Counted from the stretch's first letter, positions 1 through 62,522 are shown. The stretch: DNA of 64,000 nt from Macrostomum lignano (GCA_002269645.1 NIVC01003072.1:57336-121335), one strand, 5' to 3'. The notes: generated by a model not told the origin, from the sequence alone. Numbers and translations: made by a program.

Positions 1-310
1 TCCCGACTTTCATTTAACCTTTTTCGGTAAACATCAAAGGCGCCTCCCGACTTTCATTGAACCTTTTTCGGTAAACATCAAAGGCACCTCCCGACTTTCA
101 TTGAACATTTTTCGGTAAACATCAAAGGCACCTTCAGACTTTCATTGAACCTTTTTCGGTAAACATCAAAGGCACCTTCCCACTTTCATTGAACCTTTTT
201 CGGTAAACATCAAAGGCACCTTCCCACTTTCATTGAACCTTTTTCGGTAAACATCAAAGGCACCTCCCCACTTTCATTGAACCTTCTTCTGTTAACATCA
301 AAGGCACCTC
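1..310. repeat. 44-bp intronic minisatellite (~7 copies, runs off the window start)
   Basis: Unit CCCGACTTTCATTGAACCTTTTTCGGTAAACATCAAAGGCACCT recurs at 1, 45, 89 and onward, just upstream of the acceptor at 345. Confidence 0.9.
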
Positions 311-345
311 CCGATACGATAGTTATTATCTTAATCCCCCTGCAG

Positions 346-734
346 GGCACGAAGAGCTGGTCCGCTGCATCCGTTTCGACTCCAAACGAATTGTGTCTGG
401 CGCCTACGACGGCAAGATCAAAGTGTGGGACCTGCAGGCCGCCCTTGACCCCAGATCGTCGGCCGACGCGCTGTGCATCGTCACACTCAGCGAACACTCT
501 GGCAGGGTGTTCCGCTTGCAATTCGACGAATTTCAGATCGTTTCATCGTCCCACGACGATACTATCTTAGTGTGGGATTTCCTTGGCGACGATGGGGATC
601 AGGGGGGCACTAAGGAAGCCGCCGATGAAGAGGTTGATGAGGCTGTTGTGCTGCACTTTGCCGATGCCGACGCCGAGGATGAAGGCGGCGGTGGAGACGC
701 CGAAGACAACGAGGCCGGAGATGAGGATGATTGA
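346..734 (+). CDS. BTRC: Last exon of beta-TrCP/Slimb (FBXW1/11) F-box WD40 protein
   Basis: After the acceptor tgcag|gg the exon reads [37 protein letters not shown]...[31 protein letters not shown], the diagnostic last WD40 repeats of beta-TrCP. An acidic tail follows, then TGA at 732-734. Confidence 0.95.
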
Positions 735-984
735 ATTAAATAATAGTTCAAAATTAATGGTTTTAAAAAAAACTTTTTTTGAAAAAAAAATTAATTTAGC
801 GTGTGTTTTGTCAAAGGCATCTAAATGAAATATAGTATGTTTGTACGAGGGCTGCATGCGCCCTGGAGCAACGTCCTGCCCATTCCGCTGACTTCTGAAC
901 ACATACAAGCGTGCCAATACTGTACGCAGTCGCGCACTCGTACACACGTTCACACAGAGTGCACAGCGGCCCTGATTTTATCAT

Positions 985-1640
985 CAGCCATAGACAATAA
1001 AGCCAATCAAAGCCACTGCCGCAGAGCTGCACTCGGCCATAGACAATAAAGCCAATCAAGGCCACTGCCGCAGAGCTGCACTCGGCCATAGACAATAAAG
1101 CCAATCAAGGCCACTGCCGCAGAGCTGCACTCGGCCATAGACAATAAGGCCAATCAAAGCCACTGCCACAAAACTGCACTCGGCCATAGACAATAAGGCC
1201 AATCAAAGCCACTGCCACAAAACTGCACTCGGCCATAGACAATAAGGCCAATCAAAGCCACTGCCACAGAACTTTACTCGGCCATAGACAATAAAGACAA
1301 CCAAAGCCACTGCCACAGAACTGCACTCGGCCATAGAGAATAAAGCCAATCAAAGCCATTGCCACAGAACTGCACTCGGCCATAGACAATAAAGCCAATC
1401 AAAGCCACTGCCACAGCTGGCACAGAACTGCACTCGGCCATAGACAATAAAGCCGATCAAAGCCACTGCCACAGCTGGCACAGAACTGCACTCGGCCATA
1501 GACAATAAAGCCAATCAAAGCCACTGCCACAGCTGGCACAGAACTGCACTCGGCCATAGACAATAAAGCCGATCAAAGCCACACTGCCACAGCTGGCACA
1601 GAACTGCACTCGGCCATAGACAATAAAGCCGATCAAATTG
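985..1640. repeat. 49-bp minisatellite whose later units are ~58 bp
   Basis: Unit GCACTCGGCCATAGACAATAAAGCCAATCAAAGCCACTGCCACAGAACT; copies after ~1410 gain AGCTGGCAC. Confidence 0.9.
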
Positions 1641-2019
1641 ATAATAAAGCCTTTGAATAAAGAATTTTAAACTTGATTGGCTTTGCTGTAAAATATCATT
1701 TTTCTACCTCTATACACCAGTGTCTACTCTAGTCTGTAAATGTGTTAGTTTGTAACTTCAATTACAATCTTAACTGGTTAAATTCCATCAAATTGGTGTG
1801 CTTTTTGCCATATCTGAGCAAAGCATTCAATATGTTGTTGGTGATAATCATTGCATCTGATAAGCTAATGATTGTAAAGCATTTTATTGTGTCCATTTTG
1901 TCTACTTTGCCTATTTTGTTTGTTACTTGTATTCAGTCAGCATATATAGTGGTGTTATGTGTTTCAACTGTGTCCGTCTTATCTGCCTTTTATCTCATCT
2001 TCCTAATCTCACCCCCTCT

Positions 2020-2560
2020 TAATTTCACCAATCTCAATCCCACCAATCTCCCAATCTCACTAATCTCTCAATCCCACAAATCTCTCAATCTCACCCATCT
2101 CTCAATCTCACCCATCTCTCAATCGCCCCTATCTCTCAATCTCACCCATCTCTCAATCTCACCCATCTCTCAATCTCACCCATCTCTCAATCGCCCCTAT
2201 CTCTCAATCTCACCCATCTCTTAATCTCACCTATCTCTCAATCTCATCCATCTCTCAATCTCATCCATCTCTTAATCTCACCCATCTCTCAATCTCATCC
2301 ATCTCTCAATTTCATCCGTCTCTCAACCTCCCCCATCTATCAATCTCACCCATCTCTCAATTTCATCCGTCTCTCAACCTCCCCCATCTATCAATCTCAC
2401 CCATCTCTCAATCTCACCCATCTCTCAATCTCATCCATCTCTCAATCTCACCCATCTCTTAATCTCACCCATCTCTCAATCTCACCCATCTCTCAATCGC
2501 CCCCATCTCTCAATCTCACCCATCTCTCAATCTCACCCATCTCTCAATCTCACCCAATAT
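2020..2560. repeat. ~17-bp pyrimidine-rich minisatellite
   Basis: ATCTCTCAATCTCACCC repeated with variants. Confidence 0.9.
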
Positions 2561-3079
2561 CCATTTCACAGTAACAATGTTTTATATTCCAGTACTTTAT
2601 ATTTATCCCAGTAATTTATATTCAGTCTTAAACCATCTGAAGTCGCAGCAGTCTCACAATTTGGCAGTGTATTATTCCATGAATGTTTATAATCGTTTTA
2701 ATATGGTTCAAATAAAAGTTATTCAGTCCAAAGTACTGCAACAGGCAGTTTGCTCTTTCGTAATGTGTAAAAATAGTATTTATTATTATATGTTCGCGAA
2801 AAAATTAAAGAAAAGCGAATTTTACTACTAATATTTTAATCAAAAGTCTAGTACGTACTCAGATACGATTCAACATATCATTTTTTGTTCAACTTGAAAA
2901 AGAAGCGGCTTGATAAAAAACAACCTATTAGACTACAGAGAGCAGAAAGTAAAAAACTCAACAAAAATCTACTTTAGGCATTAACATCTTAATGGAATCA
3001 TAATTGATTATTACTAGCTAGATTTAATAAAGCATAAACAGTATCATGCAATCACTGATTAAACTAGAAAATTATTGTC

Positions 3080-3800
3080 AACAAGTTTCCCGTAGTTGTT
3101 TTGGATTTACAAAAGGGGAATCCCTTATTTATTTATAGTTTTAACATAGGATCCCGTAGCTGATTTAAGTTTTACAATGGGGAATCCCGTAACTATTTTT
3201 AGTTTTGCAAAGGGGAATCCGGATTCCGGTTGCTGTTTTTGGTTCTACAAATGGAAATTCCATAACTTTTTAGTTCTTCAAAGGGGAATCCCGCCGGTTT
3301 TTTAGTTTTACAACAGGAATTCCATAGCTATTTTAGTTTTGCAAAGGGGAATCCCATAGCTATTTTAGTTTTGCAAAGGGGAATCCCATAGCTATTTTAG
3401 TTTTGCAAAGGGGAATCCCATAGCTATTTTAGTTTTGCAAAGGGGAATCCCATAGCTATTTTAGTTTTGCAAAGGGGAATCCCATAGCTATTTTAGTTTT
3501 GCAAAGGGGAATACCATAGCTATTTTAGTTTTACAAATGGGAATCCCATAGCTATTTTAGTTTTGCAAAGGGGAATCCCATAGCTATTTTAGTTTTGCAA
3601 AGGGGAATCCCATAGCTATTTTAGTTTTGCAAAGGGGAATTCCATAGTCGTTCTGGAGTTTTACAAAAGAGACTCCCGCTGCTATTTATAGTTGCTAAAA
3701 AGGAAATCCCATATTATTGATTTTTAAGTGAGGAATCCTGTCCCGTCAATATTTGCGAGCGTATGCTAGCTGGTGTCTATGATCCCCCAAAGGGGAATCC
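3080..3800. repeat. 32-bp minisatellite with a homogeneous core (3320-3645) and decayed flanks
   Basis: CCATAGCTATTTTAGTTTTGCAAAGGGGAATC tandem copies. Confidence 0.85.
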
Positions 3801-3903
3801 CATCGATAATGTTTTTATCGATTCAGATAAAAAACGGGGAACCTTCTCGCAATGGTTTAACACCTCTAAAAATAGAAACAATTTTTCGTCTCTTTGAGTC
3901 ATT

Positions 3904-5400
3904 TTACTCAGCTGACTCGGCCGAGCTGCTGCTGCTTAGCGAGGAGTCCGACGTCCAGGCAGCCTCATTGTCGTCATCTTGGGTGGTCGCCGCGTTGTCT
4001 CCGACGCCTGGAAATTCCGTCAGCGTCGCCGTGCCGCCAAACCTCACGGCGGAAACTTTGGCGGCGGCATCGCGACCGCTGTTTCTTGCCTTCTGCTTCG
4101 ACTTTCGCTTTCGTCTGCTAGCGTTTTTTTCGCCTTTGCGTTTCTTAGAATCCGCATCCCGAAGTTGTTCTGGCGAATGCATGGTCTGTAGAACAGCGCG
4201 CAGCAGGCACAGGAACGCTTCGCTGGCGCTCTCCGAGTCTAGCGCCGTTGCCTCGCGCCAAACCAGGCCGTGGCGCCGAGCCAGCGCCAGGCCGGACTGA
4301 GCTCCGGAGGGCGTAGGGAGCTCGCGGCGGTCGAGCTTGTTGCCGATCAGAGCGATGGGGGCGTCGGCCGGTAGTCCGACGCTGTCGCCGTCCTGTGCCG
4401 GGCGCAGTCGCTGCAGCCAGGCCTCGCAGTCGCGGAGGCTGTCCGCGTCAGTGACGTCATAGACCAGCATAGCACACTGGCAGCCGCTGTAGTAGCCCTC
4501 CGAGTTGCTGCGATGGCTGGGAGTAATGGCGGTGGACTTTGTTAGCACCTACCTCACTCCCTGCACCCACCTCACTCTGCACCCACCTCAATCTGCACCC
4601 ACCCCACTTTCCGCACCCGCCTCACTCCCCGCACCCACCTCACTCCCCGCGCCCACCTCACTCTGCACCCACCTCAATCTGCACCCACCCCACTCCCTGC
4701 ACCTACCTTACTCCCTGCGCCCACCTCACTCCCTGCACCTACCTCACTTCCTGCACCCACCTCACTCCCTGCGCCCACCTCACTCCCTGCACCCACCTCA
4801 CTCCCTGCACCCACCCCACTTTCCGCACCCGCCTCACTCCCCGCACCCACCTCACTCCCCGCGCCCACCTCACTCCCCGCACCCACCTCACTCCCCGCGC
4901 CCACCTCACTCTTCGCACCCACCTCACTCCCCGCGCCCACCTCACTCTGCACCCACCTCAATCTGCACCCACCCCACTCCCTGCACCTACCTTACTCCCT
5001 GCGCCCACCTCACTCCCTGCACCTACCTAACTTCCTGCACCCACCTCACTCCCTGCGCCCACCTCACTCCCTGCACCCACCTCACTCCCTGCACCCACCC
5101 CACTTTCCTGCACCCGCCTCACTCCCCGCACCCACCTCACTCCCCGCGCCCACCTCACTCCCCGCGCCCACCTCACTCCACACATCCCTTCGCGCACCAC
5201 CGTGCGAACGTCAAAATCTCCTCACCTCTCCTGACCGGCAGTGTCCCAAATCTGGCATTGGACCGGCACCCCGTCAACCTTGACCAGTCGGCTCTGCAGA
5301 CTCGCGGCCACTGTCGGCGCATACGATTCGTTGAATTGGCCGCCTACAAAGCGAGCCAGAAGGCTTGACTTGCCAACGCCAGCGTTCCCAACAACGATTA
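3904..5400 (-). CDS. Divergent Rab-like GTPase domain 4 (exons 18-19) plus basic and Ser/acidic tail, no CC/CXC
   Basis: [14 protein letters not shown] / PTVAASL / [19 protein letters not shown] / IGNKLD / EATALD; the tail contains [19 protein letters not shown] and ends [10 protein letters not shown]. Confidence 0.88.
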
Positions 5401-8400
5401 CTGCGGGAGTTGATCGGTTTAATCATTGGTAAACATAAAGTTGTTTGGCGCCATCGATTCTTATCGTTTAGTTTGGCGCCATTTGTGTCTAGGTTGACGC
5501 CTTTAGTGTCTAGTTTGGCGCCATTTGTGTCTAGTTTGGCGCCATTTGTGTCTTATTTAAAAGCCCTAAAAATCGCCCAAGATCACCATTGACGAGCACA
5601 GCAGGCCTGTCGGGCACAGACGCAGTCTGGGACTCAATCAACGGCAGCTCCTCCACGCTGGCACCTGGCGGCGCGCTTTGCCGCTGACTGTCAACGGTGA
5701 ATCTGGACAAAACTTTCGAATCGAAATTCGACGAACTCATATCTTTGACACTCGCCAGCATGCTGTCAATCTCTGCTATCCGTATTGACGCGTTGGCCGC
5801 CTTCGTCGCTGTCTCCGCCTTCTGAAGCTTCATCTGGGCGAGGCAGCGACTCTGCAGGCCCCTGAAAGCCTGGCCGACATTCTGTCCGGTGCGGGCGCTG
5901 ACGCCCCAGCACAGCTCGACGCCGTGCGACTTGGCGAACACGTCAGCCTCCTCCTGAGTCACGGCGGCCTCATCCGAGTCGCTCTTGTTGGCCACCAAAG
6001 CCACGGGCGTGGACTCTGGCGCGGAGGCCCGCAGCTCCTGCAGCCAGCGCTCGCAGCTGTCGAAGCTGTCGCGGTTCGAGGCGTCGAAGATCAGCAGGGC
6101 GCCGGCGCAGCCTCGGTAGTAGGCGCTCGTGATGGAGCGGAACCTGCGGATGTCGGGGAGGGGCGAAGGGCGGTCTAAGGGGTGTTATGGTTTAGGTTTT
6201 ATGATCCGGGTGTTATGATCCAGGTGGTACGATCCAGGTGTTATAATCCAAGTGTTATGATCCAGGTGTTATGATCCAGGTGTTATAATCCAGGTGTTAT
6301 AATCCAGGTGTTATGATCCAGGTGTTATGATTCAGATATTATGATCCAAGATTTATAATTTGAGTGTCATGTCATGCTTCCGGTGTTTTAATATAGGTTT
6401 ATGAGCCTAGATCATAAATGGGCAACCCCCCTGATTTACACTGGCCATGTGACTTACTTTTTGACCAAAAATGCGACTTACCTGTGAAAGAAACCCTAGA
6501 GCAACATTAACGCAATTTTGGGTAAACGGCAGGAGTAACCATGACTCTCTTTTAAGGGCTAAATGCCTCGTCATCTAATTAGTACTACGTCTGTATTCTT
6601 TGGGGTGGGCATTTTTGCGACTTACCCCTGGTCCACCACAATTTATGGTGGCCAGATCGGCCAGCAGTTGCGCATGTATGGCCTAGATTCATGATTCAGT
6701 TATTATGATCCAGGTGTTATGGTCCCTGTTGTCTAATGAGTTAGTGATAGTAACTTATGTGTAAATCTAATGGGTTTTATAGCACATAATTTCGTCCAAA
6801 AATAAAGTTGATAAAGGAAACAGCGAGCTATCCGACTTCAACCTCACCTCTGTTGTCCCGCCGTATCCCAAATCTGAGTTTGCACTCGCGACCCGTCAAT
6901 GTCGCTGTTCACCACGCGAAAGTCCACTCCGATGGTGGGCATTGCCTTGAGGCTCTCGTCAAATTCCTGGTCAATAAATCGGCGGACCAGGCAGGACTTG
7001 CCGACGCCGGAGTCTCCGATTAGCACCGCTGCGTGGGAGTGGGCGGCGCGACGTGATGGACAACAAGCATTGTCACACCCACCTCACTCTACACCCACCT
7101 CCGAACCTCACTCCACTCCGCACCCACCTCACTCCGCACTCACCTCATTCCGCACTGACCTCATTCCACACCCACCTCACTACACACCCACCTCACTCCG
7201 CACTCACCCCACTCCACACCCGCTTCACTCCGTATCCACCCCACTCTAAATCCACCCAACTCCGCACCCACCCCACTCCGCACTCACCCCACTCCACACC
7301 CGCTTCACTCCGTATCCACCCCACTCTAAATCCACCCAACTCCGCACCCACCCCACTCCGCACTCACCTCACTCCGCACTCACCTCACTCCGGATCCACC
7401 CCACTCCGCACTCACCTCACTACACACCCACCTCACTCCGCACTCACCTCACTCCGCACTCACCTCACTCCTGATCCACCCCACTCCGCACCCACCTCTC
7501 TCCGCACCCACCTCACTCCGCACTCACCTCACTCCGCACCCACCTCACTCCGCACTCACCTCACTCCGCACCCACCTCACTCCGCACCCACCTCACTCCG
7601 CACCCACCTCACTCCGCACCCACCTCACTCCACACCCGCCGCACTCCGCACCCAGCTCACTCCACACCCACCTCACTCCACACCCGCCGCACTCCGCACC
7701 CAGCTCACTCCGCATATCCATCTCACTTCGCACCCACGTAACAGTCAGATGGTAAAGACAAGGATGCTATATCTCACTTTTTATCACATAGTCAGGAGAG
7801 CGATCATCGTTTAGGTTTGCCTGTCCCACTGCTGCTGGCTTCGAAATGGGAGACTCCTTCGACTGCTTAGTAGATTTACTCGCATTAATGGCCTTCGGAG
7901 CGAAAGCAGCCGATTCGTTTGACTGCTGGGTCTGTGTCGAACTGGGAATCGGTTATAAAGAGAAAATATTTGCGTTGTTATGCGGATGAAGTTGTGTTGC
8001 TATGGGGATGAAATCGTGTTGCTATGTGCTTGAGGTTTTATTGCCATGGGGATGAATTTTTGTTGCTATGGGGGATGAAATCGTGTTGTCATGTGTTTGA
8101 GGTTGTGTTGCGATGGGGATGATGTTGTGTTGCTATGACGATGAGAATGTATAGCTAAAAGGGATTAAATGCTGTTGCAAAGGCCAAACACCAACCCGAA
8201 TTGCTGGCTCTGGCTCTGCAGAACCCGACTCTGCAGGCCCCTGAATGCCTGGCCGACATTCTGTCCGGTGCGAGCGCTGACCCCCCAGCACAGCTCGACG
8301 CCGTGCGACTTGGCAAATTCGTAAGCCTCCTCCTGAGTCACGGCGGCCTCATCCGAGTCGCTCTTGTTGGCCACCAGAACCGCGGCCGTGGAGTCTGGCG

Positions 8401-11400
8401 CGTTGGCCCGCAGCTCCTGCAGCCAGCGCTCGCAGCTATCGAAGCTGTCGCGGTTCGAGGCGTCGAAGATCAGCAGGGCGCCGGCGCAGCCTCGGTAGTA
8501 GGCGCTCGTGATGGAGCGGAACCTGCGGATGTCGGGTAATTTATGGATGGGTTTGGCCCCAGTCTAACAGTAACAGGTGTCTCTGTCTAACAGGTGTGAG
8601 GCCCCAGTCTAACAGGTGTCTCTGTCTAACAGGTGTGAGGCCCCAGTCTAACAGGTGTCTCTGTCTAACAGGTGTGAGGCCACTGTCTAACAGGTGTGAG
8701 GCCTCTGTCTAACAGGTGTGAGGCCTCTGTCTAACAGGTGTGAGGCCTCTGTCTAACAGGTGTGAGGCCTCTGTCTAACAGGTGTGAGGGCCCAGTCTAA
8801 CAAGTGTGAGGCCTCTGTCTAACATATAAGCCTTCTCAGGCTAGCGTAATTCCATCTCAAACTTACCTCTCGGCACCAGCTGTGTCCCAGAACACACTCT
8901 TGACTCGACAGCCATCAATATTGTCTTTCACAGCTCGAAATTCCACTCCAATAGTTTGCGGCATTTCGTTAGTCGAATAAAATTCTTTGTCTGCAAATCG
9001 CTGAAGCAAGCTGGACTTCCCAACACCGGAGTCACCAATTAGAAGAACTGAATGATAGATTGAATGAGCGTAATGCAATAATTCTTTATTTTTACCTTCT
9101 ACAATAAAACAGTTCAATCCTGCTTACCTTTCATCTGATAATCAATATGTTCGTTAGAATTTTCACTTTTCTTAGGCACCAACTGAGGCAATTGTCGCAT
9201 GTCAGTTGACTTCATTGGAGCCTGATTTGAACTCAATCTGTGCATACATGTGCAACCTCCAAAATTCGGTCAGCCGTGCGACTTAGTTTTAACAAAAATG
9301 CGACGTAGTTTTTGGCCAAAAATGCGACTTACATATAAAAAAACCCGAAAGCAAAATTAACGCAACTTTGGGTAAACGGCAGGAGTAACTATGACTGTTT
9401 TATTAAGCTAAAATGCCTCGTCAGCTACTTAGTACTACTCTTCAGGTTATTTTTTGGGTGGGCATTTTTGCGACTTCCTTGATTGGCCGCCAAATCGGTC
9501 GGCCGGATCGGCCGACTCGGCCGACTGTTGCGCATGTATGAATCTGTGGGAAGGCGAAACCCTAAGTTCTTGGTTACCATGCGAGAGTATCTTGTTGCTA
9601 TGCGAGACTAGCGTATTGCTATGCGAGACTAGCGTGTTGCTATGCGAGACTAGCGTGTTGCTATGCGAGACTAGCGTGTTGCTATGCGAGACTAGCGTGT
9701 TGCTACGCGAGACTAGCATGTTGCTATGCGAGACTAGCGTGTTGCTATGCGAGACTAGCGTGTTGCTATGCGAGACTATCGTGTTGCTATGCTTTCTATT
9801 CTGAAACTTTCAGTAGCTCAATAACTAACCCATCAACTTTGCTCTGCAGCACCCGACTCTGCAGGCCCCTGAAAGCCTGGCCGACATTCTGTCCGGTGCG
9901 AGCGCTGACGCCCCAGCACAGCTCGACGCCGTGCGACTTGGCGAACTCGGCCGCTTCCTCCTGAGTCACGGCGGCCTCATCCGAGTCGCTCTTGTTGGCC
10001 ACCAGAACCACGGACATGGACTCTGGCGCGGAAGCCCGCAGCTCCTGCAGCCAGCGCTCGCAGCTATCGAAGCTGTCGCGGTTCGAGGCGTCGAAGACCA
10101 GCAAGGCGCCGGCGCAGCCTCGGTAGTAGGATGATATTATCGTGCGGAATCTGGAGTTTTGTTGAAGTCAGAGGCAAGTGTACATTAGGGGGTAGAGATT
10201 GAATGGGGTTGGTCAGACAGACAAGTGTACATTTGGAAGGGGTAGAGATTGAATGGGATGATAAGAGACAAGTGTACGAGCGTACATTTGGAGGGGGTAG
10301 GAATTGAATGGGATTGGTCAGACAAGTGTACATTAGGGGGTAGAGATTCGGGCTTGATCAGAGGCAAGTGCGCACAAGTAAAAATGCAAGGAATCACCTC
10401 TCTTGTCCAGCGGTGTCCCAGATCTGGCACTTGATGCTTGACCCATCGATTTCATTTTTAACAATTTTGAAGTCCACACCAATTGTTGGGATCGCGTTTT
10501 GACTTTCTTCGAATGAGTTTTCAGCAAATCTGCGCAACAGGCAGGATTTCCCGACTCCGGAATTGCCTATGAGCAGCACTGTGGAATTAAAGATAAACAA
10601 GACGATTTCTTAATATACATGTAAAAAGCCATTTAAGGACAAATATTTTTAATTTAAACTGGAAGAAATCGCACATTTTATCAAGCGTTGCTGTTTTGCT
10701 TCAGCTGCCGTCTCGGATCCGTCAACAGCAGTTCTGGACTCTGGGTTTTGAGCTGCTTTGGCTTCATTTTGTCTGAAAAGAATGTTTGGTAAAGTGAGTT
10801 TTGAATAGAACTACGTGTAGACACGTTCTTAACCGAACCAGACACGTTCTTAACCGAACCAGACACGTTCTTAACCGAACTAGACACGTTCTTAACCGAA
10901 CCAGACACGTTCTTAACCGAACCAGACACGTTCTTAACCGAACTAGACACGTTCTTAACCGAACCAGACACGTTCTTAACCGAACCAGGCACGTTCTTAA
11001 CCGAACCAGACACGTTCTTAACCGAACCAGACACGTTCTAGCGGCATTATACACTTTCACAGAGTTAAAAACACATTTTACCAAAATCAGACCAGGTTAG
11101 AGCTGTTTAGAGCGCGCTCAAACTCACTCAGTTTTGCTGCCTTCAACTCCCTGACCATCTGCCGTGGTGGCAGCGGCAGCGACTGCGGCGGCAGCGACCT
11201 GCCTCACCAGTTCCTTCCTGTCGTCGCCCCAGGCCCGGAATCGCCGAAAGAACTCTTTGTCGGGTCGATCGTGCAAAGCGGCCCAATCCAGGCCCTGAGC
11301 AGACCGCGACATCGGATGTCTGCTCAACCAATCCTGCCGTCTAGCCGTCATATCATCGCTTGTCGTCGCTGCAGCAGCAGCTTCAGCCGAGTCTTTGGAC

Positions 11401-14400
11401 TCGCTTAGCAACTCAATAGCGAGAATGTAGGCCTGATCTAGCCATCGAATATAAGAGCCGTAGCATTCAGTCTGTTCGATGACGTCATTGGCCAAGGCAA
11501 AGGCTCGTTTGGGATTGCCGGCGGCTCGGTGCAGCCTTTAGAGATTAAAAAGTATTAAAATTATTGAATCTCAATTAGATGACCCAAGTTTACCAAAAGA
11601 TTGACAGACTCATGCAGGGATTAACAGACTTAAAATCCCAGGCTCAAAATCTCAGACTCAAAACCTCACAGACTCAAAATCTCACAGACTCAAATCTTAC
11701 AGAATCAAAGTCTCACAGAATCAAAATCTCAAAGGCTCAAATCTCAGAGACTCAAAATCTCAGACTCAAAATCTCAGACTCAAAATCTCACAGACTCAAA
11801 ATCTCACACTCACTCAAAATCTCACACTCAAAATCTCACAGACTCAAAATCACCCAGACTCAAAATCTCACATACTCAAAATCACCCAGACTCAAAATCT
11901 CAAAGACTCAAAATCACCCAGACTCAAAATCTCACCGACTCAAAATCTCAGACTCCAAATCCCAGACTCCAAACCTCACAGACTCAAACTCTCCCAGATT
12001 CAAAATCACCCAGACTCAAAATCTGACAGACTCAAAATCTCACAGACTCAAAATCTCACAGACTCAAAATCTCAGAATAAAAAATCTGACAAACAAAAAA
12101 TGACCCACTTAGCCAACTGGAGTTTAGCTCTGAGCAGCAGGTGCCCTTGAGCTGGCTGGCTGTCAATCAGCGCTTCTAGAGCTTCATCAGCCAGCCGCTC
12201 AGCCTCCGGACGGTACTCCCCCGAAGGCACATCGGCCAGAAGTCTGCCCAGACAGATTCTGGCTTGCACAGCAGCCGGACTGTGCCGACCGATGGTATTC
12301 GAGAAAATTTCAACAGATTTTCTACCGAATTCGATGGCGACTTGAAGAAGTTCAACTGGCAGCATGGCGGGGTTCGCTAGGCGAGCAGCTTGGGCTAAAT
12401 TAGTCATCAAGGAGGCAGCGTTGGGATGCTGAGATGCCGACTCGCCAGAGCTCATTCTGACTGCGGCTAGAGAGGCTTCCACGTGAGCGACAACTTCTTG
12501 GGGCTCCGCAATTGCACCCTGACCGCGGCGGCTGCGATGACGGAGCCGGAGAAGGTGCGCCAACGACAGGTGCGACTGGACTTCGGCTAGTAGCGGGTGC
12601 TGGTAGCCCAGGATGAGCTGAGCGAATAAAGATGCGTTCTGGAATTTGATGGATAGGAAATTTATTAAATTTTATAAGAATGAGGTGAGAATTAGCCTTA
12701 GAAACGGAATTGATTTTTCCTAGAAAGAGAGAATAAGTTTCCTATAGAATGAGATCCAATTTTTACGAAAAGAACGAAGTTTTTTAGCTGATGCGATATT
12801 TTCTAAGAATTAGGTGTAATCTAAAAATTATATTTTGTTAGAACAGAACGACATTGGCGGAATTAGTTGGATTGATGTTAGCATTCGTCAGCAAATGAAA
12901 TCAGTGGTTCCTTTGTTTATTGGTGTATTAGGAACGAATAAAGAAAAAGGGGAAGATAAAGATATGACGATGCGCCTGCCGTATATTTATAGATATGACT
13001 TGGTTTTCGAGAAAGTTCTAAAAATATTTTCTACAGTATAACAAATTTAACGTGCTGATTAATTTACAGATAATTACACAGATATTTACTATGCTATATC
13101 CAGGACGTTTACTATACTATTTACTATAGTACATAATTTAGTATTCATTAATAAATGCTTGAAACTAGCTCGTAGAATATTATTAGGTGAAGATAAACTT
13201 CTGCAAAGATCGCGACATTTGGATTTGTGCATGGTTTCTAGAATGTTAGATTAATACGGTTAATGAAAGTTTCTCGAACGAAGGGCGGTACAATGTCAAA
13301 TCGATTCTTATTTAAAATTTACATCGGACTATCTTAAGATACTGACATGGTTTTTAAACCATGAGATACTTAAGATTGCACCGAATTACTTACTTAAAAG
13401 CTAAAAAAATTACACTAAAATAACTATTACTTAAAAAAACTAAATTTTCTGACTTTGGTTTGTTTCCTTCTTAGAATGACATCGTATAAATTTCGATACA
13501 GTAAAAATAAAATTCGTTTTTCATACATATGAGACCAAATAGTTTTCTAGGGATGTTAGAGAGATATTTCCAAACACTAGAAAATAAAACTTTGCACACC
13601 CGTGACCAAACTTACCACAGCAACTTCGACTCCAAAATCATCTTGACAGAAAGCGTTTGAAAATTTGACAAAGTTTAACAACGACTTGATGTATTCCGGC
13701 GATTCTGTTTTGTAAAATTTGCTGAAATAATAATAAATTAAAATTTATGTTAATATTAAGTCAAGCGGGTATGGAAATTACAAAAAAGTACTTACTAAGC
13801 ATGCTGTACGCAAGCAACAGCTAATTTTTCCGCTTTTCCTTCATCGGAATTTGTTAGGTAAAGTTGCAAAGCGTGGTAGAGAATTTTGAAGACGGCCTCT
13901 GTATCATTAAGATCCACAGTCTAAAATTGATATTTTATAAAATTTTCCAAGTATAAAAGAAATCTTTTCTATATTCGCTCAAGAGACGACTCAATTTATG
14001 TATAATTACCATAATTTAAATTCAATAAAAGTCTTTTTAATTTAAATTTTTACTTACTATTTTTCGTTTTTTTATTATTATATATTAAAAAACGTAAGAA
14101 AAAAATAAATATAACTAAATATTTAATAGAGCTATTGATCATTTAAAACTATAAGTAAAACAAATAATAATGAATCCTGTTTAATAAAAGAAAACTCTGC
14201 AGGCCCGCACTGGCAAATAATTAATCAATTAATATTCTTATGCTTGCATATTCTAAAAAATCTAAAAACAAATTAGCATGCACTCACCGAGATGGCGCTA
14301 CCAAAAGCACCCAACGCGGACGCCAGGCTACCCTGGTCCAGCAGCATCCGACCAATCTGTGCCTGCAGCAGGGCCTGGTTGTCCATCACTTTTTGGCCAA

Positions 14401-17246
14401 ACGACAAGCGGTTGATTCTGGCCGCCGTGGCCTGGGCCGCCTGACTGGCAGCGTCGGCCAGCTGGTAGTCGGCGTTGTTGAGCCTGGCTTCCATCAGCCT
14501 GACGCTGGCGCGGTAGGTTGGCAGCAGGGCTTCCACGCAGTCGCCGCCGAACCTTTTCAAGGAGATTAGTGAGAGTTATATACAGTCGCTTGTGTCACAG
14601 AGACTATGGTGGCTTTGTGTGTCACATGGATGTAATAAAATGGCAACATGGCCATACATGTGCAACACCCTGGCGAGGGGCTTAGCCAAGGTAAGTCACA
14701 AAAATGCCAACCCAAAAATAGACATAGCACTAATTAGGTACTGAGACATTTAGCCTTAAAAATCAAGTCATAGTTACTCCTGCCGTTTACCCAAAATTTT
14801 GTTAATTTTAGCACAAAAGCCCCAAATGAATGTCACCGTCAGTCATAGTCATCGGATGTTGTGATGGAATTATTTTATCACTAGATCGCCGAGCGTTACA
14901 CTAACAACGTGTGAAACAAGTTTTACTTCAGACAGCTCAGATACTTAAGCAGCCTCACCTATTCAGATAGTCGCACAAAGACCCGGCAACTGTCTCGCAC
15001 TCTCTAAACAGATTGACTCCGGCCAGAAAGTCGAACAGTCGGCCGGCCAAATTTGCCAGCTTAGTAGCCGCGTACCGCGACCATCCACCGTCGGTGAAAA
15101 GTCGTCGACCGTCCGGCCCGGTAGATAAGTTAGCAAACGCGGTTGCTATGGCGTTGCCAAGGCTAGGCGCATCGGCTAGTAAGTATTTATAAGCCAGATG
15201 ACGCTTGCGAATGTCGCACAGCAGACGGTGCAGCGGCGAAATGAAGCAGACCAGCATGAGTCGTTCGGGATTGGCCGAACCGGCGGCTTGCAAGGCGAAC
15301 TCGTCGGCGGTTCGCAGTCGCGACAGGCATCGACGCTCGTGCTTGGCCGCGGAGCGACCGCTGCCGCCGTTAGCTGTCCAGGCTTCGTAAGTTCGAGCCA
15401 GGTGCTCGGGCAAGTCCTCCGGTAGGCGACTCAATCGAATAGACGGATTGGCTTCGAGCTGACTCAGTCTGGACTTGGCCGCCGAGCGTAGCGCCTTCCA
15501 ACGCTGACGATGCTCTGCAGACGTCGGATCGTCTTCTTGAGGTTGAATCGGCGGCAGCGGCGGCTGCTGCTGCTGCTGCTCAGAGTGTTGCATTGAGTCT
15601 GTGGAACTCGATTTCAGATTGGCTAGATTTGTGCTGTCTAGAAAGTCAACCAGGATTTGATGATTCCGAGCGGTGGTGGCGTCGACGGTGGATGTTGCCG
15701 ATAGAGACGTCCTGGGTAGGTGACGGGACTTTGCTTCTAGATCGCTTGCTCTAGAGGTTCCTCTGGTGTGGATTAGATCTAGAGGGCGATTCTCTGGTGC
15801 AGATTAGATCTAGAGGGCGATTCTCTGGTGCAGATTAGATCTAGAGGGCGATTCTCTGGTGCAGATTAAATGTAGAGGGCGATTCTCTGGTGCAGATTAA
15901 ATGTAGAGGGCCATTCTCTGGTGTAGATTAGATCTAGAGGGCCATTCTCTGGTGTAGATTAGATCTAGAGGGCCATTCTCTGGTCCAGATTAGATCTAGG
16001 GGGCTGGTTTTCAGAATAGAGATTCGAGGGCGATTCTCAGAACAGAGATTTGAGGGCGATTCTCAGAACAGAGATTTGAGGGCGATTCTCAGAATAGAGA
16101 TTCGAGGGCGATTCTCAGAATAGAGATTCGAGGGCGATTCTCAGAATAGAGATTCGAGGGCGATTCTCAGAATAGAGATTCGAGGGCGATTCTCAGAATA
16201 GAGATTTGAGGGCGATTCTCAGAATAGAGATTCGAAGAACAGAAGGGCGTTCATTCGGCAATACTTGCAGCTCACATTCCCACCTGAACTTGTTGTACCA
16301 CTGGGTGCTGGGATCCTTGCTGGGCAGCATGTCAAGCAGCATTCGCGTCTTCTCAGACCTGTTGGCACCGCGGGACACGAAGCGAACATCGGTGTCGCTG
16401 AGAATACCTTCACGTCTCAGGTAATCAACCACGGGATCTACATTGAGCTGCTGTACAAGGCAGACTCGATTGACGCGAAGTCGAAGAACATTTTGGGCCT
16501 CTCGTTGGCTCACTGAGCTGACGCGGTCTTGCACAGATCTTGATTTGGGTTTTGAATGCAAAAATAGCTTTTTTTCAAAGACTTCTTTCATTTTAATTTT
16601 GATAGCCATGCAAAGCAAAATGTCTAACTTTTAATTTAGTTTTCTATGCTAAATCATAATTAGAAAATTAGCTTTAAGTGCATAATTTAAGAGGAAAAGT
16701 TAGAATTGATTTTCAGTAATTTTTATTCCTAAGAAGGTATGGCAGTTATTGATAAATAGCATAACAACCTAAAGCAAAGATATTAAACAAAATGCTATAA
16801 AAGCATTATTGCAATTATTAAAGCTATTACTGATAAAATAAAAAATCGATATACTATATATATTACCTAGTGACAATTAATATACAATTATATTTTAAAC
16901 CAGTTGACCAAAAGTAATATTAATAAGGTTTTTTGTTTAGCACATGCCATATGAATTCTGATGTTCTGCACTTAATGACTAGACAATGTTAGTAATGTAA
17001 ATTCTTCTTAAATGATGTACGAGCCTTTTAAAAGCAACAGTCGACAAATAAACAAAACATATGTCTAAAAATTAGATGTTTAGTAGAGAGGTAAAATTGA
17101 TCGCATACCTAGATAGATACCTACCGACAAACCATTTTTATTATATGGAGTACACGAATATCTTAAAATGAAAAACATTGAAGATTAGATTACCTCGAAG
17201 AAGCGTTACCAACTTTCTCTTGCAAAGTTGGAAAATTTCTGCTCAT
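3904..17246 (-). CDS. Multi-exon gene: CARD - helical/TPR region - four tandem Rab-like GTPase domains (~1800 aa)
   Basis: Hand-spliced exons (minus strand): 17246-17194, 16538-16284, 15711-14959, 14552-14288, 13920-13796, 13721-13616, 12638-12109, 11535-11128, 10772-10675, 10578-10398, 10150-9830, 9237-9128, 9047-8867, 8522-8196, 7941-7778, 7028-6848, 6143-5587, 5400-5226, 4516-3904. All introns are GT-AG and all phases match. The total is 5403 nt (1800 aa + stop) with no internal stop. Confidence 0.85.
4545..5180. repeat. ~18-bp intronic minisatellite (intron 18)
   Basis: GCACCCACCTCACTCCCT tandem copies; explains the spurious His/Pro-rich ORFs here. Confidence 0.9.
5587..7028 (-). CDS. 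Rab-like GTPase domain 3 (exons 16-17) plus linker
   Basis: [17 protein letters not shown] / PTIGVDF / [19 protein letters not shown] / VANKSD / GVSARTG. Confidence 0.92.
6190..6360. repeat. 14-bp minisatellite
   Basis: CCAGGTGTTATGAT tandem copies. Confidence 0.85.
6413..6680. mobile_element. hAT-type MITE, copy A (268 bp)
   Basis: Imperfect 14-bp TIRs CATAAATGGGCAAC...GTTGCGCATGTATG, flanked by a perfect 8-bp TSD GCCTAGAT (6405-6412, 6681-6688). The internal sequence is homologous to 9243-9540. Confidence 0.85.
7075..7735. repeat. ~16-bp intronic minisatellite related to the 4545-5180 array
   Basis: CGCACCCACCTCACTC core. Confidence 0.9.
8196..9047 (-). CDS. Rab-like GTPase domain 2 (exons 13-14); catalytic Gln replaced by Ala
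   Basis: [17 protein letters not shown] / QTIGVEF / [19 protein letters not shown] / VANKSD / GVSARTG. Confidence 0.92.
8560..8825. repeat. ~22-bp minisatellite
   Basis: TCTAACAGGTGTGAGGCCTCTG tandem copies. Confidence 0.85.
9243..9540. mobile_element. hAT-type MITE, copy B (298 bp), inserted at a splice acceptor
   Basis: TIRs CATACATGTGCAAC / GTTGCGCATGTATG (13/14 match); perfect 8-bp TSD AATCTGTG at 9235-9242 and 9541-9548. Confidence 0.9.
9590..9790. repeat. 21-bp minisatellite
   Basis: GTGTTGCTATGCGAGACTAGC tandem copies. Confidence 0.9.
9830..10578 (-). CDS. Rab-like GTPase domain 1 (exons 10-11)
   Basis: [16 protein letters not shown] / PTIGVDF / [19 protein letters not shown] / VANKSD / GVSARTG. 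Confidence 0.92.
10160..10380. repeat. Degenerate tandem repeat in intron 10
   Basis: Recurring GACAAGTGTACAT...GGGGTAGAGATTGAATGGG. Confidence 0.6.
10810..11040. repeat. 21-bp minisatellite
   Basis: AGACACGTTCTTAACCGAACC, about 10 copies. Confidence 0.9.
11128..14552 (-). CDS. Exons 4-8: TPR-like helical repeats (kinesin-light-chain/TPR_10-12 type)
   Basis: Recurring HP..A....L motifs: [80 protein letters not shown]. The region is Ala/Leu-rich and helical in character. Confidence 0.7.
11640..12075. repeat. ~16-bp minisatellite
   Basis: CAGACTCAAAATCTCA tandem copies. Confidence 0.9.
14653..14815. mobile_element. Truncated third copy of the same hAT MITE family, inverted orientation
   Basis: Starts with TIR CATACATGTGCAAC. 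The internal GTCATAGTTACTCCTGCCGTTTACCCAAAA is the reverse complement of GGGTAAACGGCAGGAGTAAC(C/T)ATGAC in copies A and B. No second TIR seen. Confidence 0.7.
15770..16240. repeat. Compound minisatellite: 31-bp units changing to 26-bp units that share GAGGGCGATTCTC
   Basis: TAGAGGGCGATTCTCTGGTGCAGATTAGATC followed by GAGGGCGATTCTCAGAATAGAGATTC. Confidence 0.85.
16284..16538 (-). CDS. Exon 2: CARD (death-fold) domain, completed by the start of exon 3
   Basis: [67 protein letters not shown]|RTSLSAT...HQILVDFL matches the CARD pattern (LV..L.V..V.DYL...GIL; EK.R.LLD.LP.K). Confidence 0.85.
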
Positions 17247-17646
17247 TTCCTCTTAAAAAGTATCTAGTAGTCTTATTTTTAAACACACGCAAAGTATCCA
17301 AAATTGCTAGACTACCTTACAGTCCGTGAGCTATAGATCATTCTTGGGTCTTATTAAACTTGAAATCGTTACCCCAAACAAAAAAATACTTACATAAATT
17401 TGTTCTATTTTCAATCTGTTATATCAAAAAACTTTTTATTTATTTGATACTTGCGCTATTACTATAGAATTAAGGGCGAAGTAATTTTGTTCAGAAGATT
17501 TTGTTTTACTTGTTGTAGCTAATAGTGTCGCTCCTATTCAGTTTAAAATTTGAATATGTTTTCGGCTATATACAAAATCAAATCATCGGTTTGATCTATA
17601 CCAGCGTCTTTGTATTTTCCTACTGACAAGAGAAGCAAAGCTCCTA
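17247..17646. promoter_or_regulatory. Putative bidirectional promoter (400 bp between divergent ATGs)
   Basis: Lies between the ATG of the CARD-Rab gene (17246, minus) and the ATG of CFAP90 (17647, plus). Inferred from geometry only. Confidence 0.5.
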
Positions 17647-18550
17647 ATGGAAGAAGAGCAAAGCGATTTTGTTATTCCCGTAAAGACGGATACTGACGAA
17701 TTCGTCTTGCGAGGTCGCCCTTGCGAGCTTTCCTCATTTTCTTTTGTCCCTCCAGAGCGCCATGCACCGAGGGAACGTACATATTTCAACGTAGATAAAA
17801 ATTTAAGATTTTGCCACTAGTATGAAAGTAGCTTCCAGACCATATATAAGCATTTTACATGCCCAGCTGTCCTAAAGTAATACTGGCTTAAACCCTCTAA
17901 AGTTAGAACAGACAAAATAATATAGAGTTGGTAATTTTTTTGTCAGTTTTAAGTGCTTTAATTTTATTTTAAAACCCACGAGACTTTGAAAATAGATTAT
18001 ATATAAATAAAGGAAAGGCGAAATTGAAGACTACAACTACCTTAGATGCAGCGCAGTATACAGTAAAAATAGATTAAAATTTCAATACATTTCCTCTCTC
18101 ACCCTAGCTATTGCCTTTACCGCCCATCCCACAGGAACGCTACTCGGCCTATGGCTACGATAGGATTTTTCACCAGGAGCGCGATTTCAATGCCAAGCTG
18201 CACAGAGACGACAGGGAGCATGCAAAGTCTCAAGGCCTCCAAGTGCATCAGGAGGTAATTTAAATGTTTTGTAACGGCTAGTAGTGAACTTTATAAGTTC
18301 AAAACATTTACACTGCAAATAATTACATTTTAACGGCTTGGTACGTTGATGATCCGTTTTAACACGGTTCCTGGATATAACGATATTTCCAGGAAATTTC
18401 AAAGCCGGTACCGACTCTCTACTCGTCTGTGTACGGCAAGCGGCTATCGAATCAGCTGGACCCCCGGATCGGGCGCATTGCCGCATCGGCATCGTTCAGT
18501 CCGAGTTCTACAGGCGAAACGGCACAGAGATCAATGGGCACAAGGCGTAG
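17647..18550 (+). CDS. CFAP90: CFAP90/C5orf49 homolog, 3 exons, apparent 1-nt frameshift in exon 3
   Basis: Exons 17647-17790, 18135-18254 and 18393-18550 read MEEEQSDF...LRGRPCELSSFSFVPPERHAPRERTYFN|ERYSAYGYDRIFHQERDFNAKLHRDDREHAKSQGLQVHQE|EISKPVPTLYSSVYGKRL. After a shift at the C5 run (18461-18465) it continues DRAHCRIGIVQSEFYRRNG...*. KLHRDDREHAKS and SSVYGKR are the conserved C5orf49 motifs. Confidence 0.88.
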
Positions 18551-20159
18551 ATTAAGGTTCAAACGCTCAACTATATTTATTAATTAATAATTACAGCAAC
18601 GAAATTTTCTCTTTCCTTAATTCTATTCTTGTTATAATAAGCCAACAGTTTATTGTTTAATTATATTGCTAAATAATGTTTGATAGAGTTCATGGCGTGT
18701 TCCCGTATGGAACTGGATTTGAACTGTTCTAATATGCGAAATAAACAAATACATGTCCACGTATCTTTGTTCTTTTGCATTCCTAATGAGATGAGTTCAA
18801 CTTTTATTGTCTTCATTATTTAGTTTAACGTACATCTGTACATGTACAGAACGAAAAGGACGAAATCCAGCATTCTGATGCCGTAGTTTTTTTATCTTGT
18901 TAGCTGCCCGCTGAGTTGCAGATGGCCCGTCGCTGGAGGTCACCCCCACTTTCCTTTTCTTCACAGGACGGCTCTTTCAGTTCAGTGTTGTCACTCTGAG
19001 TGCCAATACTGAGAAATCCCCCAGCCGGTTCGTCTTGGTCACGCACTGCCGCCGTGCTCGCTCGGACAAAATCTGCTTCCATCGCTGCATCTTGATGAAG
19101 GCATATTCTGATTGCCGCAGTGAAGTCTCATTGTCTGCAAGTTAAAAATATTGTGTTCTGAATTCCTGGGATTGTAACTCCAACTGTGCCCCCCAAGCGC
19201 CAACCTAAAGGGTGAAATGGATCTTTTTGGCGCCGAGTGCCATTTTTTATGCCCTGTTGGATCTTTCAAGAGGAGTAGAATAATGAGGGGTAATATATAG
19301 GGTGACACACAACAGAGGGTCGCGTCTCGGTGGGGGTGGGTGGAGCGAGCCAATCAAATGTGATTCCCGCGGGAATGACCCGTGGGAATCCCGCGGGAAA
19401 TCAGTTCCTAATTCCCGTGGCCATGACTGTACACTGTAAATCGTAAAAATAACAGCGATTATTGATAAGAGTATCAATAATTCCTATACAGTATTCGCCC
19501 ACTATAAGCAAAATTCTCGTTGTATTTATATTAAGTTATAATTTAAATCCATCATATATATTAATGGACAACTGAAGTATTAAAAATAATTTTACGTTTG
19601 CAAACAAAAGATAAGATTTTTTTGTTAATTTAATACAAACGTAAGAGAACATATTGATTTTCAAGTCCCAAAAATTGTTTATTAAGAATGAAAAACCCAA
19701 GTAGGGTCTGTATACTTATACGGCCAGTTTATGCCTGTAAATATGCAGGATGCAGAAGCAGATTTTACCAAAAACCACAGAAGCAAACACAATAGAAAAA
19801 ACAATTCAACCAAAAAATATTGATTAATAGAACAATACCGATTGCCACAGTTTCAGTGAGTATTAATCTCACGTTTTTAGCAGCTTAGATACGCTTTGTG
19901 CAATTCATTGCAGCAAAAAGCCAAATAGTTACCAATGTACGATATTGCAATTGATCATTTATCCAAACGTGAAACAGAAAAATAAAATTAATAATAGAAT
20001 TTCAAGATCACTCAGGCTGGAATTGATGATCAGAAATAGATTATTTTTGAATGGGACAAACAGAACAGTTTATTATCAACAAAAGGCGTTCGTTTCAACT
20101 TGAGTAGGGCTGAGAGTGGCTTCCGTTACAAACAAGAGAAATGAGAGCTTTGAGAAATG

Positions 20160-20520
20160 AGAAATGAGATGCAGAACCTCAGGAGAGAGTGAGATAGGGA
20201 GATACTCGTAGTGAGTTGGGAAGATAGTGAGATGGGGAGATAGTGAGATGGGGAGATAGTGAGTTGGGGAGATGGGGAGATGGGGAGAGAGTGAGATGGG
20301 GAGAGAGTGAGATGGGGAGATAGAGATAGTGAGTTGGGGAGATGGGAAGATAGTGAGATGGGGAAAGAGTGAGATGGGGAGAGAGTGAGATGGGAAGATA
20401 GTGAGATGGGGAGATAGTGAGATGGGGAGATAGTGAGACGGGGAGAGAGTGAGATGGGGAGAAGATGGGGAGAGAGTGAGATGGGGAGAGAGTGAGACGG
20501 GGAGAGAGTGAGATTGGAAA
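20160..20520. repeat. Purine-rich ~16-bp minisatellite
   Basis: GAGATAGTGAGATGGG variants. Confidence 0.85.
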
Positions 20521-21489: not shown

Positions 21490-21490
<1 letters not shown>

Positions 21491-62494: not shown

Positions 62495-62522
62495 CTGCTC
62501 GGGTGCAAGGTGGATAAAGTGG

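Follow-up and report, generated by a model that had tools for sequence, protein, structure and literature searches.

Evidence for partial gene conversion among the tandem Rab-like domains of a CARD-encoding gene in Macrostomum lignano

RESULTS

A CARD gene with four tandem Rab-like domains

The window analyzed here is a stretch of 64,000 nucleotides comprising the last 64 kb of contig NIVC01003072.1 of Macrostomum lignano (assembly Mlig_3_7), and all window coordinates are counted from its first nucleotide. Its minus strand carries a gene for a protein with a CARD, an APPBP2-like TPR part, and four Rab-like GTPase domains (D1 to D4). This gene corresponds to UniProt entry A0A1I8FWW3 (P0001, "CARD domain-containing protein") and to GenBank model BOX15_Mlig018981g1 (P0009), through which the locus (L002) was recovered as window positions 27246..1 with a 100% match. 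Each Rab-like domain is split by an intron into an N-half exon, which ends at the DTAGQE motif or its variant, and a C-half exon, which runs from switch II to alpha5. In D1 to D3, the C-half exons (C1 to C3) were nearly identical to one another, whereas the N-half exons (N1 to N3) had diverged widely, and it is this contrast that we sought to explain. A single open reading frame (ORF) was assembled from eleven exons between 10772 and 3904 with canonical AG/GT sites. Identical junctions, reading through D1 to D4, are found in P0203, a GenBank model of a sister locus guided by transcriptome sequencing (RNA-seq), for which the annotation method has been described (PMC5730564). The gene and the exons of its Rab array are as follows.

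3904..17246, minus strand: whole gene, encoding a CARD, an APPBP2-like TPR solenoid, and four tandem Rab-like GTPase domains
10675..10772, minus strand: linker exon from the TPR part to D1, 98 nt, in frame, present in P0009 and P0203
10398..10578, minus strand: N1, N-half of D1 (beta1, P-loop, alpha1, switch I, beta2-beta3, and DTAGQE), 181 nt, GC 0.46, GC content at third codon positions (GC3) 0.53, unconverted
9830..10150, minus strand: C1, C-half of D1 (switch II to alpha5), homogenized core 10130-9841, GC3 0.82-0.86
9128..9237, minus strand: linker exon between D1 and D2, 110 nt, in frame, GC3 0.39
8867..9047, minus strand: N2, N-half of D2 (DTAGAE), 181 nt, GC 0.46, GC3 0.42, unconverted
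8196..8522, minus strand: C2, C-half of D2, homogenized tract 8536-8226, including 14 nt of the upstream intron
7778..7941, minus strand: linker exon between D2 and D3, 164 nt, in frame, GC3 0.50
6848..7028, minus strand: N3, N-half of D3 (DTAGQQ), 181 nt, GC 0.57, GC3 0.69, unconverted
5587..6143, minus strand: C3, C-half of D3 with a unique tail of 260 nt, homogenized tract 6157-5847, GC3 0.90 in the core and 0.69 in the tail
5226..5400, minus strand: N4, N-half of the divergent D4, 175 nt, without the 2-amino-acid insertion common to N1 to N3
3904..4516, minus strand: C4, C-half of D4 together with the stop codon and a basic/acidic tail, lacking a Cys prenylation motif and taking no part in the conversion system

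All six of the exons N1 to N3 and C1 to C3 lie on the minus strand between AG acceptors and GT donors, and their coordinates, the 181-nt length of the N-halves, and the shared phases agreed exactly with those proposed in an initial annotation of the sequence. The acceptor at 4516 gives C4 a full-length switch II, and the stop codon of the gene occupies 3904-3906. Upstream of the array, tblastn with P0009 placed the first four exons at approximately 17246-17193, 16543-16283, 15713-14958, and 14554-14288 and the later four at approximately 13920-13798, 13720-13619, 12632-12108, and 11534-11127.

The two halves of D1 to D3 differ in age

Divergence between domains was calculated by the method of Nei and Gojobori (NG86). 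The C-halves of D2 and D3 differed at 15 of 294 nucleotides (94.9% identity), in agreement with the roughly 15 in about 293 of the initial annotation, and the C-half of D1 was 91.2% identical to that of D2 and 92.5% identical to that of D3. Nucleotide identity among the N-halves of D1 to D3 was 62 to 66%; within the window gene, N1 differed from N2 and N3 at 61 to 69 of 181 positions, N2 from N1 and N3 at 68 to 69, and N3 from N1 and N2 at 61 to 68. Counted over complete codons, 33/59 were identical between the N-halves of D2 and D3 (56%, the amino acid identity first estimated), 33/59 between D1 and D2, and 38/59 between D1 and D3. The difference counts of the N-halves and C-halves were clearly distinct (Fisher P = 6e-13 to 8e-19). 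Synonymous divergence per site (dS) was 0.11 to 0.18 in the C-halves, whereas the synonymous sites of the N-halves were saturated, with a proportion of synonymous differences (pS) of 0.72 to 0.79, a nonsynonymous divergence (dN) of 0.24 to 0.37, and a dN/dS ratio of approximately 0.1 to 0.16. Since synonymous divergence is unequal between the halves, and indeed more than 10-fold apart, the C-halves have a far more recent common ancestor than the N-halves.

The opposite pattern, with the N-half better conserved than the C-half, was seen in D4 and in other poly-Rab proteins. N4 shared 24 to 28 of 57 residues with N1 to N3, and C4 shared only 31 to 33 of 90 with C1 to C3. N1 to N3 were identical to Cryptosporidium Rab1a at 31 to 36 of 57 residues, and their similarity to one another was no higher (33 to 38 of 59). 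N1 to N3 are all 181 nt long and have the same phases, and all have an insertion of 2 residues in the alpha1/switch-I loop, which neither Rab1 nor D4 has. The best matches of all three N-halves fell in the Rab1/8/11 group, with small score gaps, and the idea that they mimic distinct Rab subfamilies was not supported.

Nearly all amino acid differences in the C-core lay in two patches, codons 38 to 48 (the alpha3-beta5 loop, which we take to be RabSF3 in Rab nomenclature) and codons 64 to 69 (the start of alpha4). These patches correspond to exon positions 116-145 and 194-208, and their ratio of nonsynonymous to synonymous differences (pN/pS) was approximately 1.1, compared to 0.08 elsewhere in the core; having been picked post hoc, after the data had been seen, they are a lead rather than a test. 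The patch sequences are not positionally conserved between gene copies A and B (see below), and fixed domain-specific roles of the patches are disfavored for this reason.

C-half exons group by gene copy

Three assembled copies of the gene were compared, namely, the window gene (copy A), a copy on another contig (copy B, locus L001), and a copy on contig NIVC01003072.1 but outside the window (copy E, locus L003). Copy B is syntenic with the window gene, with the same CFAP90 and beta-TrCP neighbors, and copy E is nearly identical to copy B. The N-halves differed between positional counterparts of A and B/E at 4 to 8 of 181 nucleotides (7 in N1, 8 in N2, and 4 to 5 in N3), compared to 59 to 69 between positions. 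For the C-cores, the relationship was reversed: C1 and C2 of copy B differed at only 4/274 positions, whereas C1 differed at 14/274 and C2 at 18/275 between copies A and B. Support was assessed with a nearest-neighbor bootstrap, which was used in place of Biopython clade supports, as these varied with the root chosen and gave obvious pairs implausibly low values. Every N-half was nearest to its positional counterpart in 100% of the replicates, whereas C1 of copy E was nearest to C2 of copy E in 98.6% and to C1 of copy A in 0.1%.

No informative core site united C1 of copy A with C1 of copy B or C2 of copy A with C2 of copy B. Rather, C1 and C2 were united within copy B at sites 46, 134, and 138 and within copy A at sites 85 and 250. 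The four-gamete test failed in 18 of the 55 site pairs of the C-core, and a Sawyer-type permutation test on polymorphic sites gave P values of 0.0002 for C2 and C3 of copy A and 0.0007 for C1 and C2 of copy B. Between copies A and B, positional pS was 0.119 in C1/C2 but only 0.071 in the N-halves, an excess that independent conversion in each copy would produce. The pooled dN/dS ratio of the N-halves between copies A and B was 0.40 (8.5 synonymous and 11.5 nonsynonymous changes). No further C-half donor was found elsewhere in the window, no other M. lignano protein among the top matches listed had a near-identical C-half, and the only high-identity matches in the protein searches were M. lignano sequences.

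Copy E occupies positions 6974-20795 of NIVC01003072.1, approximately 40 kb beyond window position 1, on the opposite strand and convergent with the window gene, and it may represent an inverted segmental duplication or a chimeric subgenome join. Its exons equal those of copy B except for one mismatch in N3 and two indels in copy B; the latter, a 1-nt deletion in C1 (approximately 17070) and a 4-nt deletion in N3 (approximately 20215), would break the reading frame, are absent in copy E, and probably reflect errors in the assembly or lesions of very recent origin. Divergence between copies A and B along 16543-3904 was mosaic, with 3 nucleotide differences in approximately 1.5 kb over exons E2 to E6, pS values of 0.03 to 0.15 from E7 to N3, and pS values below 0.01 in C3, N4, and C4. 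This suggests either exchange between the copies at both gene ends or a divergent haplotype block over D1 to D3.

Tract boundaries and base composition

The ends of the homogenized tracts were not the same in the three C-half exons. The first 20 nt of C1 are specific to D1, and its BLAST identity to C2 and C3 begins at exon position 21, whereas the likeness of C2 and C3 begins 14 nt inside the intron. At the 3' side, C3 departs at exon position 297 and C1 and C2 depart at approximately position 310. C2 and C3 are identical over the first 83 coding-frame bases (approximately 84 exon nucleotides) and over the 14-nt intron stub CCCGACATCCGCAG; this acceptor context, whose sharing by C2 and C3 had been noticed initially, is common to both exons in both gene copies. 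The differing tract ends indicate several conversion events rather than one. The longest identical runs measured 8 to 10 nt in the N-halves and 49 to 111 nt in the C-halves.

The C-half exons have an overall GC content of 0.63 to 0.66, and N1 and N2, described as AT-richer in the initial annotation, have a GC content of 0.46. GC3 was 0.86 to 0.90 in the converted cores and 0.54 in 385 nonconverted codons of the same interval (P = 5e-12). Among the singleton variants classed as weak (W) or strong (S), 10 were W and 2 were S, which is accounted for by new AT-biased mutations falling on a GC-driven background. The local excess of GC3 thus supports GC-biased conversion, without being exclusive to it.

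Domain composition of the protein

The Pfam Ras model matched the protein in four stretches (E = 1.9e-180), and the closest Protein Data Bank (PDB) structures to the Rab-like domains were those of Rab1A/B, Ypt31/32, Rab11, and Sec4 (E = 1e-40 to 1e-42). Direct reading of the translation revealed the G motifs (GxSGVGKS, T in switch I, DTAG, NKSD, and SAR) as well as the RabF motifs (IGVDF, RFRSIT, YYRG, and LVFD), the latter present in D1 to D3 and degenerate in D4. Neither the end of the protein nor the sequence after any domain showed a C-terminal Cys motif for prenylation and membrane attachment (CC, CXC, or CAAX), and because this motif is absent, D1 to D4 are Rab-like domains and not canonical Rabs. 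In all copies, D2 has DTAGAE for DTAGQE, so that the catalytic Gln is replaced by Ala (window positions ~8880-8867, at the end of N2), and poor GTP hydrolysis is predicted for D2 from the analogous Rab Q-to-L/A mutants. D3 has DTAGQQ.

The CARD was recognized by PF00619 at residues 38 to 106 (37 bits; cutoff, 23.9), its best sequence match in the PDB was the RAIDD CARD (E = 9e-4), and it was modeled with a predicted local distance difference test (pLDDT) score of 75 to 89. A usable AlphaFold model was obtained with an 8-sequence alignment, the single-sequence run being unusable (pLDDT, 47). In this model, the helical-repeat part of approximately 700 residues had a pLDDT of 70 to 85 (medium confidence), and its best Foldseek match was human APPBP2 (8jal_B; E = 2.9e-14; template modeling [TM] score by target, 0.67; 626 columns; 16% identity). 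The TPR part is therefore modeled as an APPBP2-like fold, and its role as a CRL2 receptor is only putative. The Pfam scan detected no COR domain, and Roc-type matches were present but weaker than Ras, such that identification as a ROCO protein was ruled out. Neither an EF-hand nor a kinase was detected in the protein. A STAND/NLR sensor was likewise rejected, since the protein has neither a NACHT nor an NB-ARC NTPase; the NACHT/nSTAND matches spanned only the 20-residue P-loop and no stretch passed.

Introns, repeats, and exon units

Nearly every intron of the Rab array carries a minisatellite of its own (period, 14 to 67 bp; 4 to 41 copies), as does the 3' flank.

10819-11039, 10170-10324, 9579-9792, 8581-8824, 7970-8144, 7076-7737, 6181-6348, 5469-5553, and 4545-5179: minisatellites in the array introns
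3112-3647, 2005-2556, and 987-1637: minisatellites in the 3' flank

The units after C1 (CATAGCAACACGCTAGTCTCG) and after C2 (CATAGCAACACGATTTCATCCC) have a 12-nt core in common, and a single family (CACCCACCTCACTCC) accounts for the arrays at 7076-7737 and 4545-5179. It is possible that the minisatellites are remnants of the original duplication and that they limit conversion by forming homology barriers. A dispersed element of approximately 180 to 250 bp is present in three introns, at 9545-9250 (minus strand), 6623-6447 (minus strand), and 14687-14809 (plus strand), with 76 to 84% identity; it had no match in Rfam, and an Rfam scan of window positions 1-18000 returned no RNA family. At the contig end (window positions ~59000-64000; AT skew of +1.0 in the last kilobase) lies a long (GACA)n microsatellite, which probably explains why the assembly stops there.

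The unit consisting of C1, the linker, and N2 measures 612 nt and that of C2, the linker, and N3 measures 672 nt. Both are multiples of three, and therefore splicing from N1 to C2 or C3 or from N2 to C3 would be in frame and would yield proteins with a reduced number of Rab domains. Whole domains would also be gained or lost in frame by unequal crossover between C-halves. P0009 ends in an exon derived from the dispersed-element copy at 9545; this model would represent a genuine short isoform containing a single Rab domain, or else its ending would be an artifact of annotation. An older annotation with a further C-half mosaic, P0205, is a visibly frameshifted model and was set aside as weak evidence only; it presumably derives from the more collapsed ML2 assembly.

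DISCUSSION

Intragenic conversion and its alternatives

The near-identity of C1 to C3 is very probably the product of repeated, short-tract, nonreciprocal gene conversion within one gene, that is, of concerted evolution. Gene conversion of the C-halves had been one of two explanations offered in the initial annotation, and it has gained considerably from the more than 10-fold synonymous contrast and from the grouping by gene copy that a second, syntenic copy made visible; similar dS in both halves, named there as what would speak against it, was not found, dS being clearly unequal. To these observations are added the mosaic site patterns and the contrast in composition. According to this explanation, an old internal duplication would have given rise to Rab domains 1 to 3, after which the N-half exons would have diverged independently under purifying selection while the C-half exons kept copying approximately 275 to 310 bp onto each other. 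Only the C-halves would still be able to pair for homologous repair. The N-halves would no longer be recombination substrates because no identical stretch shared among them exceeds 10 bases, and the tracts would be confined near the exon edges because the introns hold different, fast-evolving minisatellites with no homology. Conversion appears to be GC biased, which would have raised core GC3 to 0.86 to 0.90, and mismatch-repair-biased repair of heteroduplexes is the likely mechanism; the process may well be ongoing. The first escape of the N-halves could have come about through selection for different switch-I faces or by chance, and, whether selected or accidental, this early divergence would have shut conversion off there.

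Some points weigh against this explanation. At the nucleotide level, the comparison drew on only two distinct haplotypes (A and B/E) and on no outgroup species, and the direction and timing of single conversion events are not inferable without an outgroup. Copies A and B may be either homeologs (S/L subgenomes) or haplotypes. High GC3 is not exclusive to converted exons, as the exon at 14554-14288, which is not duplicated, has a GC3 of 0.81. Mlig_3_7 and the earlier ML2 assembly share their PacBio reads, and Mlig_3_7 was Pilon polished with short Illumina DNA and RNA-seq reads (PMC5730564). ML2 is thus not an independent check on Mlig_3_7, and short reads misplaced among nine near-identical segments of approximately 280 bp could have made some of the single-variant sharing artifactual.

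It is unlikely that a single recent replacement, whether by long conversion, exon duplication, or unequal crossover, filled the other two C-half positions. One event followed by mutation would suffice to explain why the cores all differ by a similar 5 to 9%, but it would not explain why the tract ends of C1, C2, and C3 differ at both the 5' and 3' sides or why copy-specific sharing runs both ways (sites 46/134/138 in copy B and 85/250 in copy A, with 18 four-gamete failures). Neither would it bring C1 and C2 of copy B to within 4 differences of each other when they are 14 to 18 differences from their counterparts in copy A. Moreover, unequal crossover alters domain number, and loci A, B, and E all have four domains.

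The other explanation in the initial annotation, diversifying selection on the P-loop/switch-I exons, holds that the two halves are of equal age and that the N-half exons were driven apart toward different partner-binding faces. The N-half amino acid identity of just 56 to 64%, the dN/dS ratios of approximately 1.0 to 1.2 for N1 and N3 between copies A and B (from 5 to 7 changes each), and the CARD, which hints at a signaling or immune context, could all be read in this way. Equal age requires equal dS, however, and the N-halves are saturated while C-half dS is 0.11 to 0.18; the N-half dN/dS ratio is approximately 0.1 to 0.16 between domains and 0.40 when pooled between copies; and all three N-halves match the same Rab1/8/11 group. 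Selection on the N-halves would also leave the grouping of the C-halves by copy and the intron stub of C2 and C3 unexplained. We therefore regard this explanation as very improbable, although the accompanying image of a shared chassis with different faces is fair as a description of the outcome, if not of its cause.

There is just as little likelihood that the near-identity is an assembly artifact created by collapsed or cross-polished repeats. The genome of M. lignano is neopolyploid, comprising three subgenomes, and chimeric scaffolds make up 36% of the assembly length (PMC10733133); the redundancy of Mlig_3_7, its short-read polishing with Pilon, and the indels of copy B (1 nt and 4 nt) that are missing from copy E are all in keeping with such an artifact. 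C1 to C3 are not identical, however (15 to 26 differences), and each is surrounded by unique introns and N-halves over approximately 4.5 kb, which is within single PacBio reads. To raise identity from 63% to 93%, polishing would have had to change approximately 100 positions in every exon, and a contrast of this size is far too large for such an artifact. Furthermore, the ORF and splice phases are intact, and both the structure with three C-half exons and the contrast recur in three assembled loci (the window, L001, and L003).

It is scarcely credible that the C-halves are as old as the N-halves and evolved extremely slowly even at synonymous sites (through codon bias, splicing enhancers, or RNA structure), for although a GC3 of 0.86 to 0.90 and a dN/dS ratio of 0.08 outside the two patches would suit it, constraint cannot bring C1 of copy B nearer to C2 of copy B than to C1 of copy A or preserve 14 intron nucleotides in C2 and C3 only, the A/B pS at C1/C2 (0.119) exceeds that of the N-halves (0.071), which is the opposite of constraint, and the C-half of D4 is only about 35% identical.

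Comparison with known systems

For the human G-gamma and A-gamma globin genes, which form a duplicated pair, partial gene conversion was reportedly described by Slightom et al. in 1980. Long-lasting concerted evolution of mammalian gene pairs is treated in another study (PMC2720389). As in the globin and mammalian pairs, one part of the M. lignano sequence is nearly identical and the rest diverged, paralogs are closer than orthologs, and the ends are sharp and lie near a repetitive intron. Unlike in those pairs, donor and acceptor are here exons of one gene, each encoding domain halves, and because the converting exons encode half-domains, the boundary cuts the GTPase fold at the DTAGQE|RF intron. 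In Podospora, WD repeats are said to form a homogenized scaffold on which a few surface positions are hypervariable. Homogenization of repeats within a gene is described in studies on spider silk genes (PMC3933166) and on the HNWD/HET STAND proteins of Podospora with their WD repeats (PMC2873952). Repeats within one ORF evolve in concert in these systems also, and the two variable patches of the C-core recall the surface positions of Podospora; the M. lignano gene differs in having three repeats, introns between the converted segments, homogenization of only half of each repeat, and no variation in repeat number among the assembled loci. A literature search on gene conversion in M. lignano found nothing relevant.

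With respect to architecture, several small-GTPase domains per chain also occur in GIMAP8, in the tandem IRG protein Irgb2-b1, and in bacterial EngA/Der, which are known multi-GTPase proteins. Poly-Rab proteins with 3 to 8 Pfam Ras stretches were found in rotifers, a ciliate, and environmental European Nucleotide Archive (ENA) contigs (P0002, with 8; P0003, with 7; P0004 and P0005 from Rotaria, with 5 to 6; and P0016 from Stentor, with 3), and gene-model fusion may account for some of them. Unlike the M. lignano gene, these multi-GTPase and poly-Rab proteins have neither the CARD nor the APPBP2-like TPR part, and in the poly-Rab proteins, unlike in D1 to D3, the N-half is the better-conserved half between domains. 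Our literature search on tandem or multi-Rab architectures found no account of such proteins. Rab44/45/CRACR2A and the ROCO proteins DAPK1 and LRRK2 are large or multidomain Rab and Roc proteins that likewise carry a Ras-superfamily domain inside a large signaling protein, and DAPK1 pairs a death fold with a GTPase. The M. lignano protein differs from them in that no COR, EF-hand, or kinase was detected and in having four GTPase domains instead of one; Rab44/45, unlike the M. lignano protein, have a prenylation motif.

Homologs with a CARD and an APPBP2-like TPR part, 790 to 860 residues long, were found in an annelid, a brachiopod, a nemertean, and two mollusks (Owenia A0A8S4N315; Lingula XP_013395164, "amyloid protein-binding protein 2"; Tubulanus; Physella; and Lottia V4AGT2). 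This spiralian family was found by a full HMMER scan, a word-indexed search with the 832-amino-acid N-terminal part having returned M. lignano only. The homologs align over residues ~30 to 800 with 24 to 29% identity (E = 1e-27 to 1e-54) and have the same CARD, but their sequences stop at the point at which the Macrostomum protein continues into its Rab array. This makes the four Rab-like domains a lineage-specific acquisition, and the combination of CARD, TPR part, and four Rab-like domains is a lineage-specific fusion that has not been described previously.

Implications

As a speculation, for which the CARD gives some basis, the protein might be an innate-immune or cell-death sensor whose nonprenylated Rab-like domains serve as baits for the Rab-targeting factors of pathogens or symbionts, as drawn from the likeness to the integrated decoys of plant NLRs and to the mouse tandem IRG decoy. 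We consider this improbable. If it were true, conversion would keep the C-half scaffold, the N-halves and two C-half loops (alpha3-beta5/RabSF3 and the alpha4 N terminus) would form distinct recognition faces, and in-frame skipping from one N-half to the C-half of the next domain could change the number of baits.

The mechanism itself is the well-known one of concerted evolution by partial gene conversion, of which the gene is a clean but ordinary case. What is unusual is that the tract boundary coincides with the intron that splits the GTPase fold, with the stretch from switch II to alpha5 evolving in concert and the P-loop, switch I, and interswitch left free. The gene is thus a compact example of conversion dividing one protein fold into a concerted half and a free half. 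Because the substrate threshold (identical runs of 8 to 10 versus 49 to 111 nt) and the GC bias are both visible within a few kilobases, it may serve as a teaching or benchmark case for GENECONV-type methods. It also calls for caution in phylogenies and dN/dS scans of multidomain genes in the neopolyploid M. lignano. Since RNA interference and transgenesis exist in M. lignano, a role of the protein in death-fold signaling or trafficking would be directly testable.

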